The notes: generated by a model not told the origin, from the letters alone. A DNA stretch of 64,000 bases from IMGVR_UViG_3300032116_000001:248001-312000, one strand, 5' to 3'. Positions 3,088-48,775 are shown, numbered from the stretch's first letter. Numbers and translations: made by a program.

Positions 3088-3930
3088 ATGTTAAGAAAAT
3101 TCGCCGAAACTGCCATGTGGCTTGACCAGCAGGGGCTTTTTGCTGAAGCTGATGTTGTAACTGACGTGCTTCGCAAATATGCTGCTAATGCCCTTTGGGA
3201 GGCAGATGACGAAAATGATGTTGAGGAAATTGACCCATATCATGCTCAGATGTATCACACAATTAAGAATTTAGACTTAAGCGACCCTGAACACCTAGAA
3301 ATTATTCGCGGCGCACATCCAGAACTTGCCGATGCGATAGAAAATTATACACCTGGCCGCAGAATACCAATGAAAGAGCCAATGCGGTATGGACCTCGGA
3401 CAGTAATGTTGCCCCCAGGATTTAAAAGCAATTTTGAAAAAAGACTCCCAGAGTTTTTTATGAGCCCAGATCAACTTCAACGCAACAGAGAGGCTTTTTA
3501 TGACAGACTCGATAAGGCCACACGCAACCGATCTCGTCGTGCAACTTTTGATTTAGATTATGCTTCTACAAGCAAACCTGGATATGAGCGGTCTTACATT
3601 TTTGATCCCGAATTAAATAGTCTAATGTCTTCTGACCCCGATTTTAGACCAAGCGAAAACAATGTTAGTCTTTATGACAAAAGAAAGCTTCGCGCACTTT
3701 TTGATCCAACATTTGATCTTGAGTCACTGGATGAAGACGAAAAATCTGGAAGAGAGCGCTATTTAGGCGTTGATCCCAAGACGGGTGAACCATACTCTCT
3801 TCCTAAGCAGATTGGTTGGGCTCACCGTCAAATTAAGCCCGAAAGTGTTTTAACATTCCGCGGTCACAAAGGCGAAGTCGATCCCGAAACTGGAAAGCGC
3901 AAGCCAAATTACTACTTTAAAGCCAGATAG
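3088..3930 (+). CDS. Hypothetical protein with N-terminal A-x2-LD-x2-G-x3-EAD motif; possible virion/internal protein
   Basis: AMWLDQQGLFAEADVVTDVLRKYA; GAGGAG SD; ends TAG-TAA. Confidence 0.75.
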   Translation: MLRKFAETAMWLDQQGLFAEADVVTDVLRKYAANALWEADDENDVEEIDPYHAQMYHTIKNLDLSDPEHLEIIRGAHPELADAIENYTPGRRIPMKEPMRYGPRTVMLPPGFKSNFEKRLPEFFMSPDQLQRNREAFYDRLDKATRNRSRRATFDLDYASTSKPGYERSYIFDPELNSLMSSDPDFRPSENNVSLYDKRKLRALFDPTFDLESLDEDEKSGRERYLGVDPKTGEPYSLPKQIGWAHRQIKPESVLTFRGHKGEVDPETGKRKPNYYFKAR

Positions 3931-42573: not shown

Positions 42574-44217
<1,644 letters not shown>

Positions 44218-44240
44218 TTGTTGTATAACAATATTTGACT

Positions 44241-44274
44241 CAAGAGGACAAACTAAATTTAGTTTGTCCTCTTG
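44241..44274. repeat. Perfect 34-bp palindrome after groL (terminator or operator)
   Basis: CAAGAGGACAAACTAAA|TTTAGTTTGTCCTCTTG. Confidence 0.85.
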
Positions 44275-44302
44275 GCTTTGAAAATATCCCAGGTAAACAT
44301 AT

Positions 44303-45178
44303 ATGAAGAAAGCCTTTACGCTCATCGAACTTCTTGTTGTTATCGCAATTATTGCTATTTTAGCTGCGATTCTTTTCCCCGTCTTTTCTCAGGCCAAGCT
44401 TGCCGCCAAGAAAACTGTTGGTTTAACCCAAGTTAAACAGATTGGAACATCAATGCAGCTGTATGTCGGCGATTATGATGACATGCTGTTTCCGTACCGA
44501 CTTAATGGTACACAAAACCCCGATTATGCCCGCGCCATTGCTGCTCGGGGGCAGGCGTATGCCGATAGCGTTGTAGGAACTAGTGCAAGAAATGTTATTT
44601 TCTTTAACCAGCTTCTGCAACCATATATGAAAAATAATGATATTTTCAAGGCACCTACCAAGCCAAATGCCTGGGCTGGCGTTGATACTTTCGGTTCTGA
44701 CACTGAACCTGCATTCCGATCTTACGGCGGACAAAACAGCTATGGTGTTAACAATTATGTGTTTACATCTCAGGCGGGCACGTCATCAATCGGCGGGGGG
44801 CTTAATATGGGCGAAATAGCAGAACCAAGCAATACTTTGATTATGGTTGATGCAAGCTATTATAATGTTCTTCCCCGATTCGTTGGAAGACTTAATGGAT
44901 ACACTGGCACATTTAATGTGTGCAGCAGCAGTTACCCGTTGTATTGGAAGAATCTCGGCAACTCCTATCTCTTTAGATGGAATGGTGGACCAAACACGCC
45001 ATCTGACGCTGAAGCTCTGCGATTGATTAATAACCGATATAATGGACCATTGAATATGGTTCAGGGCGACACTAGTTCAAGAGCCGTTGCAGCTAATGCA
45101 ATTCTGAACAACCTGAGAGATCGGGGCGCAGAATCATTTTGGGACCCATACAAACTCGGCAACACTCCATGTCCGTAA
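44303..45178 (+). CDS. Prepilin-type N-terminal cleavage/methylation domain protein (DUF1559-like)
   Basis: [35 protein letters not shown]...Y..DYDD, PYMKN, SYG.N. Confidence 0.92.
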
Positions 45179-45207
45179 TGCAACAAAACTGCATTATATA
45201 ACGTATA

Positions 45208-45243
45208 ATAATTGGCTCAACTGATTGTAGTTGGGCCAATTAT
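45208..45243. terminator. 15-bp hairpin between the two pilin-like genes
   Basis: ATAATTGGCTCAACT-N6-AGTTGGGCCAATTAT (one G-U pair). Confidence 0.6.
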
Positions 45244-45255
45244 ATTAGAATTATT

Positions 45256-46017
45256 ATGAGACAGGCTTTTACACTTATTGAATTACTTGTTGTGATCGCA
45301 ATTATCGCGGTTTTGGCTGCAATCCTTTTCCCAGTTTTTTCACAAGCAAAGGAAGCTGCCAAGAAAACTCAGTCGATTTCCAACATGCGCCAACTTGGTA
45401 TTTCCTGGCAGCTTTACAATACTGACTACGATGATACCTTAATGAGAGTTTCTGTGCCTGATGAGCATGGTGTGGTTTATTGGTGGGGATGTTGGGAAGA
45501 AGACGAACAAGAACTTAGAGTTGAGGAAGGCCTTTTATATCCTTATACTCGAAACAATGGTATTTACAAGGATTCATCTTTTAATGCTCAAGTTACGGGA
45601 AGTATGAATTTCTCTGGGTATGGATATAATTATGCTTATTTGAGTCCGTCAACTTATTCTCCTCCGAACTGGGAAGAAAATCCCATTCCCGTAAATGCTT
45701 CATCGATTGAGTTTCCATCTGAGACAGTCGCTTTTGCATCAAATGCGAGACTAAATACATGGGCTTATGACAATCCTGTTTTAGAGGGCACGGGATACTT
45801 AGAGCCACCTTCTTTCGATTTCCCAACATTTCAGGGCCGACACAATAAGCATGGCGTAGTACTTTGGTCTGACGGGCATGCCAAGGCGCAAAAGCCTATT
45901 TTGAGGACTGGGGACTTCGGCTGGGGATATAACGGGGCTCAGTTTGCCCCATATAATCTTGGGGAAATAGATAAAGATGGTAATCTTTCAACTGATGAAC
46001 TTTTTGATTTAGAGTGA
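45256..46017 (+). CDS. Prepilin-type N-terminal cleavage/methylation protein with C-terminal H-X9-DG motif
   Basis: [16 protein letters not shown]...QAKEAAKKT; GYGYN; [16 protein letters not shown]. Confidence 0.92.
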
Positions 46018-46064
46018 ATTTGCAACAGGTGTTGATCAACAAACGTAGAATAATAAAACACTAC

Positions 46065-46422
46065 GGGGGCATAAGGGATCGATTGACGTTGCTATCTTAT
46101 GTTTGCAAGGCGCGGATGTATCCTTGGCCGCGATAACAAAGGATGCAAAAAGTAAATGCGGAAAACAACTTCGCTTTCGCTGCTTAATTAAGCTGGCGCA
46201 TGAACCTGAGACGAGTCTGTAGTTAATGGGGATTGTAAAATAAATCAGACTTAGCTTTGAAACTTCGGCTTGTAGTTGAAAAAGCGATATTAATCAAGCT
46301 GCTGTCAAGAAAGTGCTGGCCTCTAGCCAAAGCTTGACTTAAGATTAATATGAGGAGAACCTTGTGGCGAGCATAGGCTCTGTACGGACAACAAGCGGGT
46401 TCAAATCCCGCTGCCTCCACCA
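46065..46422 (+). ncRNA. ssrA: tmRNA with tag (A)AENNFAFAA
   Basis: 5' GGGGGCA pairs with 3' TGCCTCC-ACCA including the G3-U Ala determinant; T-arm GCGGG-TTCAAAT-CCCGC; resume codon GCG at 46158, TAA at 46185-46187. Confidence 0.95.
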
Positions 46423-46427
46423 ATTTT

Positions 46428-46461
46428 GCAGTATGATTTTTTCATACTGCTTTTATTTTTT
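46428..46461 (+). terminator. Intrinsic terminator after the tmRNA
   Basis: GCAGTATGA-TTTTT-TCATACTGC followed by TTTTATTTTTT. Confidence 0.85.
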
Positions 46462-46617
46462 GGGCGGACTCAACTTAAACATGCCCACAGGGGCTTTTTT
46501 AATAAAATGCTGAGCAGCCAAAAGTGAATAGAATTTTTTAATATCTCCTGCTTTAAATTTGACTCCGCTATAAACTCCAGGCCGACTGCATTCTACATAA
46601 AAAACTTTTCGGTTCAT
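46453..46617 (-). CDS. Small hypothetical protein (54 aa, MNRKVFYVECSRPG...)
   Basis: Manually read ORF that fills the gap between the tmRNA and the tRNAs. Confidence 0.45.
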   Translation of the reverse strand: MNRKVFYVECSRPGVYSGVKFKAGDIKKFYSLLAAQHFIKKAPVGMFKLSPPKK

Positions 46618-46691
46618 ATGATTTTTTTTGGGTTTTTAGTCCCAAATTGCCTACTTTTTATTTAAAAATACGTATTATAATTATATTGCTT

Positions 46692-46762
46692 GCTCCATTA
46701 GCTCAATGGTAGAGCTGGGGTCTCTAAAACCTTGGTCGCGGGTTCGATTCCCGTGTGGAGCA
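46692..46762 (+). tRNA. tRNA with CUA anticodon (amber suppressor) no. 1; CCA not encoded
   Basis: Acceptor GCTCCAT/GTGGAGC, D-arm GCTC..GAGC, anticodon arm GGGGT-CTCTAAA-ACCTT (CTA at 46724-46726), T-arm GCGGG-TTCGATT-CCCGT, A73. Confidence 0.85.
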
Positions 46763-46783
46763 GACAATATATTAAAAATACGC

Positions 46784-46858
46784 GCTCTAGTAACTCAGTG
46801 GTAGAGTGGCCCTCTCTAAAAGGGCATGTCGCGGGTTCGAGTCCCGCCTAGAGCGCCA
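46784..46858 (+). tRNA. tRNA with CUA anticodon (amber suppressor) no. 2
   Basis: Acceptor GCTCTAG/CTAGAGC, D-arm ACTC..GAGT, anticodon arm GCCCT-CTCTAAA-AGGGC (CTA at 46816-46818), T-arm GCGGG-TTCGAGT-CCCGC, G73-CCA. Confidence 0.93.
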
Positions 46859-46882
46859 AGGTTTCTAAAACAATACAGAGTC

Positions 46883-47098
46883 ATGTCAAACAAAAACAAT
46901 TATCAAGAATCTGATCAACCAGACGGCGTATTTCTTAAAGGGGTCATGTATGGGGCCGTCATAAGCATTTTTATTTTAATTATAGCAAAGGCCTTATCAT
47001 TGATTTTGAGCCTAAATATATTTGCCAGCTTGGGCATTTCCGTGCTTGCTATTTTCTTAATTGCTTTATTTTTTGAAATTTTTCGGAAAAGATGCTAA
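46883..47098 (+). CDS. Small membrane protein (2 TM segments)
   Basis: MSNKNNYQ... followed by two hydrophobic helices; start moved downstream of the tRNA. Confidence 0.7.
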   Translation: MSNKNNYQESDQPDGVFLKGVMYGAVISIFILIIAKALSLILSLNIFASLGISVLAIFLIALFFEIFRKRC

Positions 47099-47115
47099 CT
47101 TTTTTGTTGAAAAGC

Positions 47116-47140
47116 AGGTATTAAAGATATAACACGAGAA
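47116..47140 (+). promoter_or_regulatory. Putative late promoter AGG-N18-AGAA upstream of the leader/tRNA-Lys unit
   Basis: Exact spacing match to the six other copies. Confidence 0.5.
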
Positions 47141-47155
47141 TTAAGGTAATTCAAA

Positions 47156-47197
47156 ATGAGACACAACATTCTTAAACGCAAACCTAAACATTACTAG
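47156..47197 (+). CDS. Putative leader peptide MRHNILKRKPKHY-amber
   Basis: TAAGGT SD 8 nt upstream; three AAA codons; TAG stop; lies within alternative hairpins. Confidence 0.6.
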   Translation: MRHNILKRKPKHY

Positions 47198-47314
47198 GTT
47201 CTAGTTCTTTCCGAGGCTAGAATCTGGCCTCTTTGCGTATGTGTCTGCAAATCAAAAGTTATTTTTAACTTTTCCTGCGATCAGAAAACCTTCGGGGCCA
47301 AAACTTTAAATTTT

Positions 47315-47390
47315 GGGTCAGTAGCTCAGTTGGTAGAGCAGCGGTCTTTTAAACCGCGGGTCGCGGGTTCGAGCCCCGCCTGGCCCACCA
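47315..47390 (+). tRNA. tRNA-Lys(UUU)
   Basis: GGGTCAG/CTGGCCC-ACCA; anticodon arm GCGGT-CTTTTAA-ACCGC. Confidence 0.96.
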
Positions 47391-47401
47391 GAATTTTTCA
47401 T

Positions 47402-47477
47402 GGAGGGATAGCTCAGTCGGTAGAGCAGCTGACTCTTAATCAGCATGTCGTGGGTTCGATCCCCACTCCCTTCACCA
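47402..47477 (+). tRNA. tRNA-Lys(CUU)
   Basis: GGAGGGA/TCCCTTC-ACCA; anticodon arm GCTGA-CTCTTAA-TCAGC. Confidence 0.96.
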
Positions 47478-47482
47478 ATATA

Positions 47483-47590
47483 TGGTGTTCTGGTACAAGT
47501 GGATTAACTCTGCGCCACAGGAAAAAGACGATGGAAAAACCCATCCATATTTGCAGAGATGTTCAGGCTCGTCCCCTGATAATTTCATCA
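47483..47590 (+). ncRNA. tRNA-like structured element or pseudo-tRNA
   Basis: D-loop-like AAGTGGATTAA, CTCTGC/GCAGAG stem enclosing a GATGG/CCATC hairpin, T-arm-like TCAGG-CTCGTCC-CCTGA. Confidence 0.35.
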
Positions 47591-47632
47591 AGATTGATTT
47601 ATTTTATTGGGCAAATTAACGGCTCAATTAAA

Positions 47633-47752
47633 AAGGAGGTCTCACCTATGTTGTAGGTCATTCGTCCGCCTTAATCATATTTGTAATTCCATTCACTAAC
47701 TTCGTTCATGGCTTTGCATAGCCCACGATTACAAACAGAAATACAAATATGA
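47633..47752 (+). promoter_or_regulatory. Amber-containing leader (ATG TTG TAG GTC ATT CGT CCG CCT TAA, 47648-47674) and an 11-bp helix over the next start codon
   Basis: AAGGAGG SD at 47633-47639; TCATATTTGTA (47675-47685) is exactly complementary to TACAAATATGA (47742-47752), which contains ATG 47749. Confidence 0.7.
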
Positions 47753-48192
47753 AAAACACACTTAATAAAAACATAACATCGACGTTCTTTAACTCTCCTG
47801 ATGGCTACGAAAAGCTTCGGTCTAAATGGAGTGAAATTGTAAATTCTAACTCAGAATACAAACTTACTGCAGCAGATTACATGCTTTATGCAATTCTTCG
47901 TGGAAAAGATTGGAGAAAAGGATTTACAATGCCCAAAAAGCAAGACCCATCTTGGGAGTACGAGACTCCAATTATTGTTTCAAACTCAATGTATACTTCT
48001 AGTACAATCCTGAGATCAATGGCTTGTCCAGTATCAAAGAGTCAAAAATTTTGGGCTGATAATTTCGGGGATATTTTAAATCTCGAAACTGCAAAATCTA
48101 TTTCTAAATTTTATTATCGTCTTGATAGAAGGGAAAATATACTTAAGCAAAGCGCTTATATTTTGGAGGATTCTTCCGAGAATGTGGCCTAA
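47749..48192 (+). CDS. Hypothetical phage protein, first gene of the leader-controlled operon
   Basis: 147 aa; LTAADYMLYAILRGKDWRKGFT; no clear SD of its own. Confidence 0.8.
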   Translation: MKNTLNKNITSTFFNSPDGYEKLRSKWSEIVNSNSEYKLTAADYMLYAILRGKDWRKGFTMPKKQDPSWEYETPIIVSNSMYTSSTILRSMACPVSKSQKFWADNFGDILNLETAKSISKFYYRLDRRENILKQSAYILEDSSENVA

Positions 48193-48775
48193 AATTGTAA
48201 TAAATGAAGATTTGCAAGTGGTTGAGACTTTGGAAACTTATGGATCACGAAGTCTGGCTCAGGCATTCGACCACTATCAAGCGCCTCGTATTAGGGATGG
48301 CGTCGAGCTTGTAACCCTTGCTGACCCAGAGACCTGGGTGCCAGCAGACTATGATAAACAATCCGAAAATTGGACCGAAAGGTCTGTTATTTTAATGTCA
48401 AAGCTATATAAAGCTTTTGAAGAAAAAATTAAAATGGTTTCTGATTATTACGTGCTCACAATGGGAGAAAGCGGAGAAAGGTTTCAACGAATTTATGCTA
48501 TTGGCGACGACCATATCACGGTTGAATATTCTTCTCGTGGATGTTTGAGGGGGTGCTGTCCCGATGAAGAATATTCTTATGATATTCCTATACAGGCACT
48601 CTGGGACACCAGCGTTATTGACAATATGAAAACCGAAAAAGAAAAAGCCGCGCAAGAGAAAAAAGCACAAGAGATTAAAGATGCCCGCGACCGCGAAAGA
48701 CAACGTAAAAAAGAACGAGAAGAAAATGAACTTAAAGAATATCATCGGCTTATGGAAAAATACAAAGGAAACTAA
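48182..48775 (+). CDS. Hypothetical protein with charged C-terminal helix
   Basis: GGAGG upstream of ATG 48182; CxxCC; ends ELKEYHRLMEKY. Confidence 0.75.
   Translation: MWPKIVINEDLQVVETLETYGSRSLAQAFDHYQAPRIRDGVELVTLADPETWVPADYDKQSENWTERSVILMSKLYKAFEEKIKMVSDYYVLTMGESGERFQRIYAIGDDHITVEYSSRGCLRGCCPDEEYSYDIPIQALWDTSVIDNMKTEKEKAAQEKKAQEIKDARDRERQRKKEREENELKEYHRLMEKYKGN

Follow-up and report, generated by a model that had tools for sequence, protein, structure and literature searches.

Leader-peptide attenuators, of which trpL, hisL and pheL and the pheM leader of pheST are examples, are short open reading frames (ORFs) preceded by a Shine-Dalgarno (SD) sequence and carrying codons for the amino acid concerned. 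Four RNA segments can form mutually exclusive 1:2, 2:3 and 3:4 hairpins, and the position of the ribosome, either at the regulatory codons or at the stop codon, selects the fold. In the classical case the 3:4 hairpin is an intrinsic terminator with a U-tract. The pheM leader shows that the principle can be applied to the translation apparatus itself.

In translational attenuation and arrest-peptide switches (ermC, SecM-secA, MifM-yidC2 and the RAPP peptides ApdA and ApdP; PMC7897499, PMC10951233), a stalled ribosome remodels downstream RNA pairing after transcription, no terminator is needed, and the output is exposure of a ribosome-binding site. T-box riboswitches bind a tRNA directly, without translation, and control aaRS and amino-acid genes; they are characterized by Stem I, a specifier loop and a T-box bulge.

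Phage tRNA-Lys as a counter to tRNA-Lys nucleases is established, as in the case of T5 tRNA-Lys against PARIS AriB (PMC11464382) and of phage tRNAs against anticodon nucleases (PMC10264068). Structured RNAs of other kinds, such as species 1 and 2 of the T4 tRNA cluster, are stable RNAs of unknown function co-located with phage tRNAs.

Here we describe a short lysine-containing ORF located directly upstream of two tRNA-Lys genes of a large freshwater phage, inside an RNA that is predicted to fold in two mutually exclusive ways. We propose, tentatively, that it is a translation-sensing switch of the leader-peptide attenuator type, whose inferred output is folding or processing of the phage's own tRNA-Lys.

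Results

The locus and its features

The analysed stretch of 64,000 nucleotides (the window) is positions 248001-312000 of IMG/VR contig UViG_3300032116_000001, a 378,848-bp phage from a freshwater metagenome. Its G+C content is 40% and its genes are dense, use the standard code and lie mostly on the + strand. Nearby genes are typical of a very large phage: RecD2-type helicase, ThyX, ATP-dependent ligase, GroEL, two pilin-like proteins and NAD synthetase. The features around the leader are the following:

46065-46422, tmRNA, followed by a canonical terminator at 46428-46460 and by a 54-aa ORF on the minus strand
46691-46858 (+), two tRNA genes with anticodon CUA (amber suppressors; 60.5 and 69 bits with the Rfam tRNA model)
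46883-47098 (+), 71-aa ORF for a two-helix membrane protein
47143-47148 (+), SD-like TAAGGT, 7 nt before the leader ATG, in the loop of a small predicted hairpin
47156-47197 (+), leader ORF of 13 codons, MRHNILKRKPKHY plus TAG (47195-47197), with Lys codons (AAA) at 47174, 47180 and 47186
47159-47182 (+), segment 1, the 5' strands of clamp helices P1 (47159-65, pairing with 47240-46) and P2 (47176-82, pairing with 47232-38), inside the ORF
47181-47200 (+), hairpin A, the 1:2 hairpin (47181-86 with 47195-200, -5.0 kcal/mol), whose 3' strand UAGGUU includes the amber codon
47196-47206 (+), segment 2, pairing either in hairpin A or with segment 3 in the alternative hairpin S2:S3 (47196-206 with 47215-225, -14.6 kcal/mol)
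47213-47225 (+), segment 3, the 5' strand of hairpin B (47213-20) and the partner of segment 2 (47215-25)
47224-47231 (+), segment 4, the 3' strand of hairpin B (47213-20 with 47224-31, -12.4 kcal/mol), with S7 as its alternative partner (S4:S7, 47225-31 with 47294-300, -13.5 kcal/mol)
47232-47246 (+), segment 5, the 3' strands of P2 and P1, including TGCGTATGTGTC (47234-45)
47254-47273 (+), hairpin C, AAAAGTTA/TAACTTTT (47254-61 with 47266-73)
47294-47300 (+), S7 (GGGGCCA), complementary to segment 4 and overlapping the 5' strand of hairpin D
47298-47316 (+), hairpin D (-3.6 kcal/mol, thus weak), whose 3' strand runs into the first nucleotides of tRNA-Lys(UUU); with S7 it can extend to tRNA nt +5
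47315-47390 (+), tRNA-Lys(UUU), found by ARAGORN and by the Rfam tRNA model (73.1 bits), the proposed regulated product
47402-47477 (+), tRNA-Lys(CUU) (72.3 bits)
47633-47752 (+), a neighbouring element, not part of the leader, with an SD (AAGGAGG) and a second mini-ORF (uORF) at 47648-47674
47749-48192 (+), a gene for a 147-aa protein

The observation made in the initial annotation, namely the SD-led ORF with three AAA codons in front of the two tRNA-Lys genes and the set of hairpin-forming complementarities, is correct in every element. These pairings had been listed as competing. In the predicted fold of the free RNA, however, P1, P2, A, B and C are all part of one nested structure, so not all of the pairings compete: the long-range clamp P1/P2 encloses hairpins A and B, and hairpins C and D follow. 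The folding z-score is only -2.1, which is unremarkable on its own, and the opposite strand folds about as well. Neither a promoter nor a terminator was called inside the element. No Rfam 15 family matched over 47099-47314; a covariance-model search of 45500-48500 at E-values up to 10 returned only tmRNA and tRNA matches, none of them in the leader. The T-box family (RF00230) was matched neither there nor in positions 1200-3000 of the relative described below, the latter at E-values up to 1. TAGGT was considered as a phage promoter motif and rejected, because 25 and 22 copies are present on the two strands against about 62 expected per 5-mer, mostly inside genes.

A distant relative keeps the ORF and competing helices

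Homologues of the downstream 147-aa protein led to ENA scaffold MUNK22-1_scaffold_10436 (locus L083), the only relative found. It is distant: its G+C content is 53%, and its flanking proteins are 53%, 72% and 25-27% identical to those of the window. The gene order is shared. A tRNA(CUA) is followed by a small membrane ORF, a mini-ORF MRHNTLKRKQKHY-TAG and three Lys or Lys-like tRNAs (Lys CUU, a UUU-type with a 27-nt insert in the anticodon loop, and Lys UUU). Next come a GIY-YIG endonuclease, absent from the window, and then the second mini-ORF and the 147-aa homologue. L083 has AAGGA 10 nt before its ATG. From the ATG to the 3' strand of P1 in segment 5 the two sequences align without a gap, TGCGTATGTGTC is identical in both, and L083 folds on its own into the same predicted three-way junction, with z = -3.8.

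We listed all 14 stems of at least 5 bp that the window block can form and asked which of them are kept in the same columns in L083. Only four are kept: B (8 of 8 pairs, with 2 compensatory changes), P1 (7 of 7 pairs, with 1 compensatory change, A-U to C-G), P2 (5 of 7 pairs) and the alternative hairpin S2:S3 (11 of 13 pairs in the extended stem, with 2 compensatory and 3 one-sided changes). In formal pair counts P1/P2/B are 100% paired, with 3 compensatory pairs, and S2:S3 is 91% paired, with 2 compensatory pairs, against 18-55% when partners are slid. As only two independent sequences exist, covariation statistics are weak, and the column-shuffle controls are not significant and, with two sequences, cannot be.

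B and S2:S3 share segment 3 and therefore exclude each other. Their energies lie within 2.2 kcal/mol of each other in each sequence: -12.4 against -14.6 in the window and -16.9 against -18.1 in L083. Hairpin A uses the UAGGU that also starts S2:S3, so A and S2:S3 exclude each other as well; L083 has a hairpin at the place of A using GGUGC, in a shifted register. The pairing between segment 4 and S7 is present in both sequences, with one compensatory pair: GGCCUC with GGGGCC in the window, GGCUCC with GGAGCC in L083. At the place equivalent to hairpin C, L083 has a different hairpin, with a C-rich 18-nt loop.

No third example was found. A full peptide-degenerate pattern, an RNA-level pattern and an N-terminal pattern in IMG/VR, a C-terminal peptide pattern in JGI metagenomes and an N-terminal pattern in GTDB genomes returned only the window's own contig or chance hits, namely A-rich coding regions and a capsid-like gene. 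Searches anchored on the 147-aa, 54-aa and membrane proteins gave L083 and many loci without the leader, and a covariance model of the element found nothing else in 35 sources. Seven further assemblies of the window phage are identical across the element, any difference being at one base outside it. Five GenBank phages with tRNA-Lys genes show no comparable leader.

The coding capacity of the leader

The SD, AUG and stop are kept in both sequences. Between the two ORFs there are 4 synonymous and 2 non-synonymous codon changes, and the three single-base differences outside the stems are all synonymous third-position changes. K7, K9 and K11, and with them the K-R-K-x-K motif, are kept. Lysine makes up 23% of the peptide (3 of 13 codons) against 5.6% in the window's ORFs, and Lys tRNAs follow the leader in both genomes, at a distance of 117 nt in the window. 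On the other hand, the two ORFs are not independent of sequence conservation, the SD is weak, three Lys in 13 codons is a modest enrichment, weaker than in hisL or pheL, and an SD-led mini-ORF of this size is not rare by chance (we estimate about 0.2 per intergenic region). We consider translation of the ORF likely and, given translation, sensing of lysine somewhat more likely than not.

Four freshwater metatranscriptome assemblies contain the phage tmRNA as exact 340-nt contigs and one of them also contains exact pieces at 47646-47966, but none covers 47100-47314, where depth is too low to conclude anything.

Ribosome position and the predicted fold

To imitate a ribosome, both RNAs were folded with a 33-nt stretch made unpairable. 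With Lys codon 7 or 9 in the A site, segment 1 and the 5' strand of A are covered, S2:S3 forms (probability 0.62-0.85), B disappears, and segment 4 pairs with S7 (0.84-0.90). With UAG in the A site, or with no ribosome, B (0.85-0.99) and D form, and S4:S7 does not. With K11 in the A site, the window sequence stays in the off fold. In these predictions the hairpins thus follow the 1:2 / 2:3 / 3:4 logic of classical attenuators, with two added layers.

There is no U-tailed terminator after B, as the initial annotation had already remarked. The tail is UUUGCGUAUGUGU, in which only 4 of 8 bases after the stem are T, and it is not called by a terminator scan that does call the terminator after the tmRNA. 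Canonical terminators were rejected as a yardstick: the scan count equals chance, with only the tmRNA terminator convincing. The 12 invariant bases that follow B are the partners of the ORF in P1/P2. P1/P2 and S4:S7 can only form in transcripts that have passed B, which argues for an effect after transcription.

We therefore included the first tRNA in the ensemble calculation and followed the probability of its acceptor stem. For the tRNA alone it is 0.94 in the window and 0.88 in L083. With the last 30 nt of leader it falls to 0.03 (0.03-0.06 over the calculations made) and 0.09, respectively. With the whole leader it is 0.08-0.10 and 0.13-0.18 in the off states, and 0.52-0.53 and 0.69-0.80 in the on states. 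Shuffling the leader after the TAG reproduced so large an on-off difference in 1 of 100 trials (window) and 3 of 100 trials (L083). The predicted anti-acceptor effect is not specific on its own, since 3 of 9 control tRNAs with their native leaders also lose the acceptor stem in this model. Moreover, thermodynamic folding ignores tRNA tertiary structure, kinetics and proteins, and undervalues real tRNA stability.

A neighbouring amber-interrupted uORF

A second element, 450 nt downstream, is better supported than the leader. Behind a strong SD lies a uORF consisting of ATG, TTG, the amber codon TAG, the codons GTC and ATT, then CGT CCG CCT (Arg-Pro-Pro) and TAA. L083 and a third scaffold, L112, have ML-TAG-VARPP-TAA and ML-TAG-TARPP-TAA. 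Eight contigs filed under Chloroflexota and Armatimonadota MAGs carry a tRNA(CUA), followed after a few dozen nucleotides by a mini-ORF of a start codon, at most one more codon (Leu, Gln or Arg) and TAG; a further 2-8 codons then lead to RAPP, RDPP or RPP, and about 100 nt further on lies a homologue of the 147-aa gene. In the 11 loci together, RAPP is present in 5, RDPP in 1 and RPP-stop in 5, always after the in-frame TAG. Arg is encoded by CGT, CGC, CGA or AGA. Selection therefore acts on the amino acids after the TAG, which means that the UAG is decoded in these uORFs. The pattern occurs once in the whole window.

RAPP is a known ribosome-arrest motif (PMC7897499, PMC10951233, PMC12992588); the Lys leader has no known arrest motif. 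The bases right after the Pro-Pro codons are complementary to the SD or start codon of the main gene (6-11 nt perfect); in the window these are the 11 nt after the stop, TCATATTTGTA at 47675-85, and TACAAATATGA at 47742-52, which include the start codon of the 147-aa gene. In folding predictions alone, a ribosome placed at Pro-Pro raises the accessibility of the start region in 10 of 11 loci, and a ribosome at UAG does not. The element looks like an arrest-peptide switch that fires only when amber suppression is active; we found no description of such a natural element, although the idea that phages respond to suppressor tRNAs has been raised (10.1101/2021.08.26.457843). RAPP-type switches regulate Sec or YidC protein-localisation components, but the 147-aa protein gave no Pfam or PHROG hit and no fold match.

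In the window and in L083 the membrane gene, the Lys leader and the tRNA-Lys genes sit between the suppressor tRNA and this uORF. A homing endonuclease joins them in L083, and an HNH-like one lies in L112. The block looks like an insertion into the suppressor-uORF module. TAG is a rare gene stop in the window (4 of 68 long ORFs, three of them with a back-up stop within 6 codons), no gene in the window or in the related loci needs recoding by TAG, and similarity searches with the CUA tRNAs gave mixed hits that did not decide their identity.

Discussion

Our best explanation, which remains tentative and on present evidence is somewhat less likely than not, is a cis-acting, translation-sensing RNA switch of the leader-peptide attenuator type in front of the phage's tRNA-Lys genes. 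In the resting state, with no ribosome or with a ribosome that has reached the UAG, hairpins A and B would form, the 5' half of the ORF would be clamped to the segment after B by P1/P2, and the free S7-D segment would trap the 5' strand of the first tRNA-Lys, so that the precursor folds or is processed poorly. When Lys-tRNA is scarce, the ribosome would wait on Lys codon 7 or 9, covering segment 1 and the 5' strand of hairpin A but leaving segment 2 free. Segment 2 would then pair with segment 3, and the released segment 4 would capture S7. Hairpin D would collapse and the acceptor stem could form, so that more phage tRNA-Lys matures. The result would be negative feedback on Lys decoding capacity, and a plausible use is to counter host nucleases that cut tRNA-Lys. 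What our analysis shows is the ORF, the helices, their conservation and covariation, and the synteny with tRNA-Lys; that the ORF is translated, that Lys codons and the supply of Lys-tRNA are the sensed signal, that the output is tRNA folding or RNase P processing, and any link to nucleases of the PrrC or PARIS type, are inferred.

The interpretation offered in the initial annotation, an attenuator-like sensor that raises the supply of phage tRNA-Lys when ribosomes stall on AAA codons or at UAG, is therefore supported only in part. The attenuator anatomy and the predicted response to a ribosome on Lys codons hold in both sequences. Stalling at UAG as a second inducing signal is not supported, since a ribosome there gives the same predicted fold, the off state, as no ribosome. 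Conservation of the UAGG can be explained by its participation in hairpin A and in S2:S3.

Other readings are less likely but deserve weighing. The same sensor might have a classical output, hairpin B and the U/G-rich tract UUUGCGUAUGUGU acting as a weak intrinsic terminator, or being followed by a Rho-dependent site, with S2:S3 as antiterminator allowing transcription into the tRNA-Lys genes. The hairpin logic matches the trp and his attenuators, B is G+C-rich and directly followed by UUU in the window, the tract after B is 100% conserved, and the C-rich, G-poor 18-nt loop of L083 could serve Rho. This main alternative for the output is nevertheless unlikely, as B is not called as a terminator, the conservation of the tract is already explained by its pairing with the ORF, and P1/P2 and the conserved S4:S7 pairing point to a role after transcription. 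Somewhat less doubtful is an untranslated structured RNA, either a bistable 5' leader guiding processing of the tRNA precursor or a stable small RNA released by RNase P, as with the stable RNAs of the T4 tRNA cluster, the ORF being a by-product of conserved sequence. The best conserved bases of the ORF are exactly those that pair in P1 and P2, the three-way junction is predicted independently in both sequences, the presence of the ORF in L083 is not independent of sequence conservation, and the SD is weak. Yet the unpaired parts of the ORF are also conserved, with single-base changes that are all synonymous, SD, AUG and stop are kept, no Rfam family matches, and an RNA-only model gives no trigger for the conserved alternative hairpin S2:S3.

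A sensor of amber suppression rather than of lysine, in which termination or read-through at UAG by the phage's tRNA(CUA) decides the fold and ties tRNA-Lys expression to the code switch of the phage, is unlikely too. In its favour, the two tRNA(CUA) genes lie 300-460 nt upstream on the same strand, the stop is TAG followed by G in both relatives, TAG is a rare gene stop, the neighbouring uORF is clearly built around a decoded UAG, and the leader frame stays open for 158 codons after the TAG, across both tRNAs (shuffle p about 0.01 in the window, 0.19 in L083). However, a protein read through the TAG can be rejected, because the residues after it are not conserved apart from those encoded by the 3' strand of P1/P2; only RNA pairing is conserved. 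Read-through, moreover, does not need the S2:S3 alternative, and a ribosome at UAG gives the resting fold. The amber codon of the leader can be explained by its pairing role, although an added link to suppression is not excluded. Least likely of all is an ordinary small basic peptide gene whose mRNA happens to be structured and whose position has no regulatory meaning. The peptide is conserved and phage intergenic regions often hold small ORFs (14 SD-led mini-ORFs in this window), but this reading does not explain two mutually exclusive hairpins conserved with compensatory changes, or the S4:S7 pairing next to the tRNA.

We found no paper describing leader-peptide control of tRNA genes. If the boldest form of our proposal is true, which we regard as possible but unlikely, this would be the first leader-peptide attenuator that controls a tRNA gene, and it would act without a terminator. 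A relay of four alternative pairings would carry the position of the ribosome on Lys codons to an anti-acceptor segment that decides whether the tRNA-Lys precursor can fold and be cut by RNase P, and the phage would make its tRNA-Lys on demand when the host pool is depleted, for example by anticodon nucleases. As the element sits inside an operon that also holds amber suppressor tRNAs and what looks like an amber-gated arrest-peptide switch, the phage would then monitor two aspects of decoding with two dedicated mini-ORFs. Phage tRNA genes are usually treated as constitutive supplements or as passive decoys against tRNA-cutting defences. A leader that measures lysine decoding and gates maturation of tRNA-Lys would show that phages can regulate tRNA supply by feedback, would extend the attenuator principle to an RNA product and to a post-transcriptional output, and would give a compact, testable part of about 160 nt for studying co-transcriptional RNA switching. 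The neighbouring uORF matters independently, as it offers a direct handle on how phages with suppressor tRNAs time or sense their change of genetic code.

Compared with known systems, the phage shares with the described counter-defence phages the possession of its own tRNA-Lys isoacceptors. Those tRNAs, however, are described as constitutively expressed array members, with no sensing leader reported (PMC11464382, PMC10264068). The stable RNAs of the T4 cluster are likewise structured non-tRNA RNAs co-located, and probably co-transcribed, with phage tRNAs, but they lie at the end of the cluster, are not known to hold a conserved ORF, and no bistable fold has been described for them. A T-box is also a cis-RNA that reports the state of one tRNA species and controls genes of the same amino-acid system through alternative helices, but it does so by binding the tRNA, whereas the leader would sense translation. 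With translational attenuation and arrest-peptide switches the proposed mechanism shares remodelling of downstream pairing by a stalled ribosome; here there is no downstream coding gene, and the proposed output is release of a tRNA acceptor strand. The closest resemblance is to the leader-peptide transcription attenuators, with which the locus shares the short SD-led ORF, the codons of the amino acid concerned and mutually exclusive hairpins whose predicted choice depends on ribosome position. It differs from them in that the regulated genes would be tRNAs and not enzymes, the 3:4 hairpin has no U-tail and there are only 3 alternating Lys codons, and in that three extra layers are present, the P1/P2 clamp, the S4:S7 pairing and hairpin D at the tRNA 5' end, in a phage leader whose stop is an amber codon in a genome that carries amber suppressors.

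Amber-interrupted uORF and suppressor tRNAs

An amber-interrupted, arrest-type uORF was detected in the window and in related loci, namely L083 (the distant relative that also carries the lysine leader), L112 (a third scaffold) and L115-L122 (eight contigs filed under Chloroflexota and Armatimonadota MAGs). The element and nearby genes are located as follows:

Window 47633-47752; L083 2884-3008; L112 640-770; L115-L122 about 3380-3500: amber-interrupted uORF
Window 46691-46763 and 46784-46858: two tRNA genes with anticodon CUA (amber suppressors)
Window 47749-48192; L115-L122 3498-3960: 147-aa protein family

The uORF consists of an SD, a start codon, at most one further codon (Leu, Gln or Arg) and TAG, followed by 2-8 codons ending in RAPP, RDPP or RPP. 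As Arg is encoded by four different codons, the UAG must be decoded. An anti-SD or anti-AUG segment follows, complementary to the start region of the conserved 147-aa gene, and the whole arrangement lies next to tRNA(CUA) in 11 loci. The uORF probably acts as a switch that turns the gene on only when amber suppression is active. Only 4 of 68 long ORFs in the window end in TAG, and three of those have a back-up stop within 6 codons. No gene in the window needs TAG read as sense. Similarity left the amino-acid identity of the two tRNAs undecided.

The 147-aa protein family carries the invariant motif LYAILRGKDWRKGFT and is always found next to a tRNA(CUA), including on 50-290-kb contigs binned as Chloroflexota, Anaerolineae, Armatimonas and Chthonomonadaceae, which may be a host hint or mis-binned phages. 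Its AlphaFold model is all-helical (pLDDT 74), and searches returned no Pfam, PHROG or fold match.

If TAG is read as sense, the frame of the lysine leader (window 47156-47674) stays open for 172 codons, across both tRNA-Lys genes, and ends at the same TAA as the second mini-ORF (the amber-interrupted uORF), in the same frame. The shuffle probability of this is about 0.01, whereas in L083 the frame runs on into the GIY-YIG endonuclease gene (p about 0.19). This open frame remains unexplained and may be due to chance.

Other genes of the locus

Further genes and blocks of the locus and its relatives are located as follows:

L083 1938-2034, L083 2151-2858 and L112 38-583: tRNA block of the relatives
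Window 46065-46422: tmRNA
Window 46453-46617, minus strand: conserved 54-aa ORF
Window 42577-46017: chaperonin and pilin-like genes

The tRNA block of the relatives holds a tRNA with a 27-nt insert in the anticodon loop (UUU-type). It is flanked by homing-endonuclease genes, GIY-YIG plus NUMOD3 in L083 and a Cys-rich HNH-like ORF on the other strand in L112, while the window has only a 170-nt spacer there.

The tmRNA is encoded by the phage, with tag peptide AENNFAFAA. It is present as exact 340-nt contigs at depth 36-57 in four freshwater metatranscriptome assemblies, and is thus probably abundantly expressed in nature. The 54-aa ORF (MNRKVFYVEC...) is 72% identical in L083, and its more distant homologues lie beside a class II aminoacyl-tRNA synthetase (PF00152, the Asp/Asn/Lys type) and an NAD synthetase in other phage-like contigs. 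The phage also encodes a GroEL-type chaperonin and two proteins with the N-terminal methylation motif of type IV pilins.
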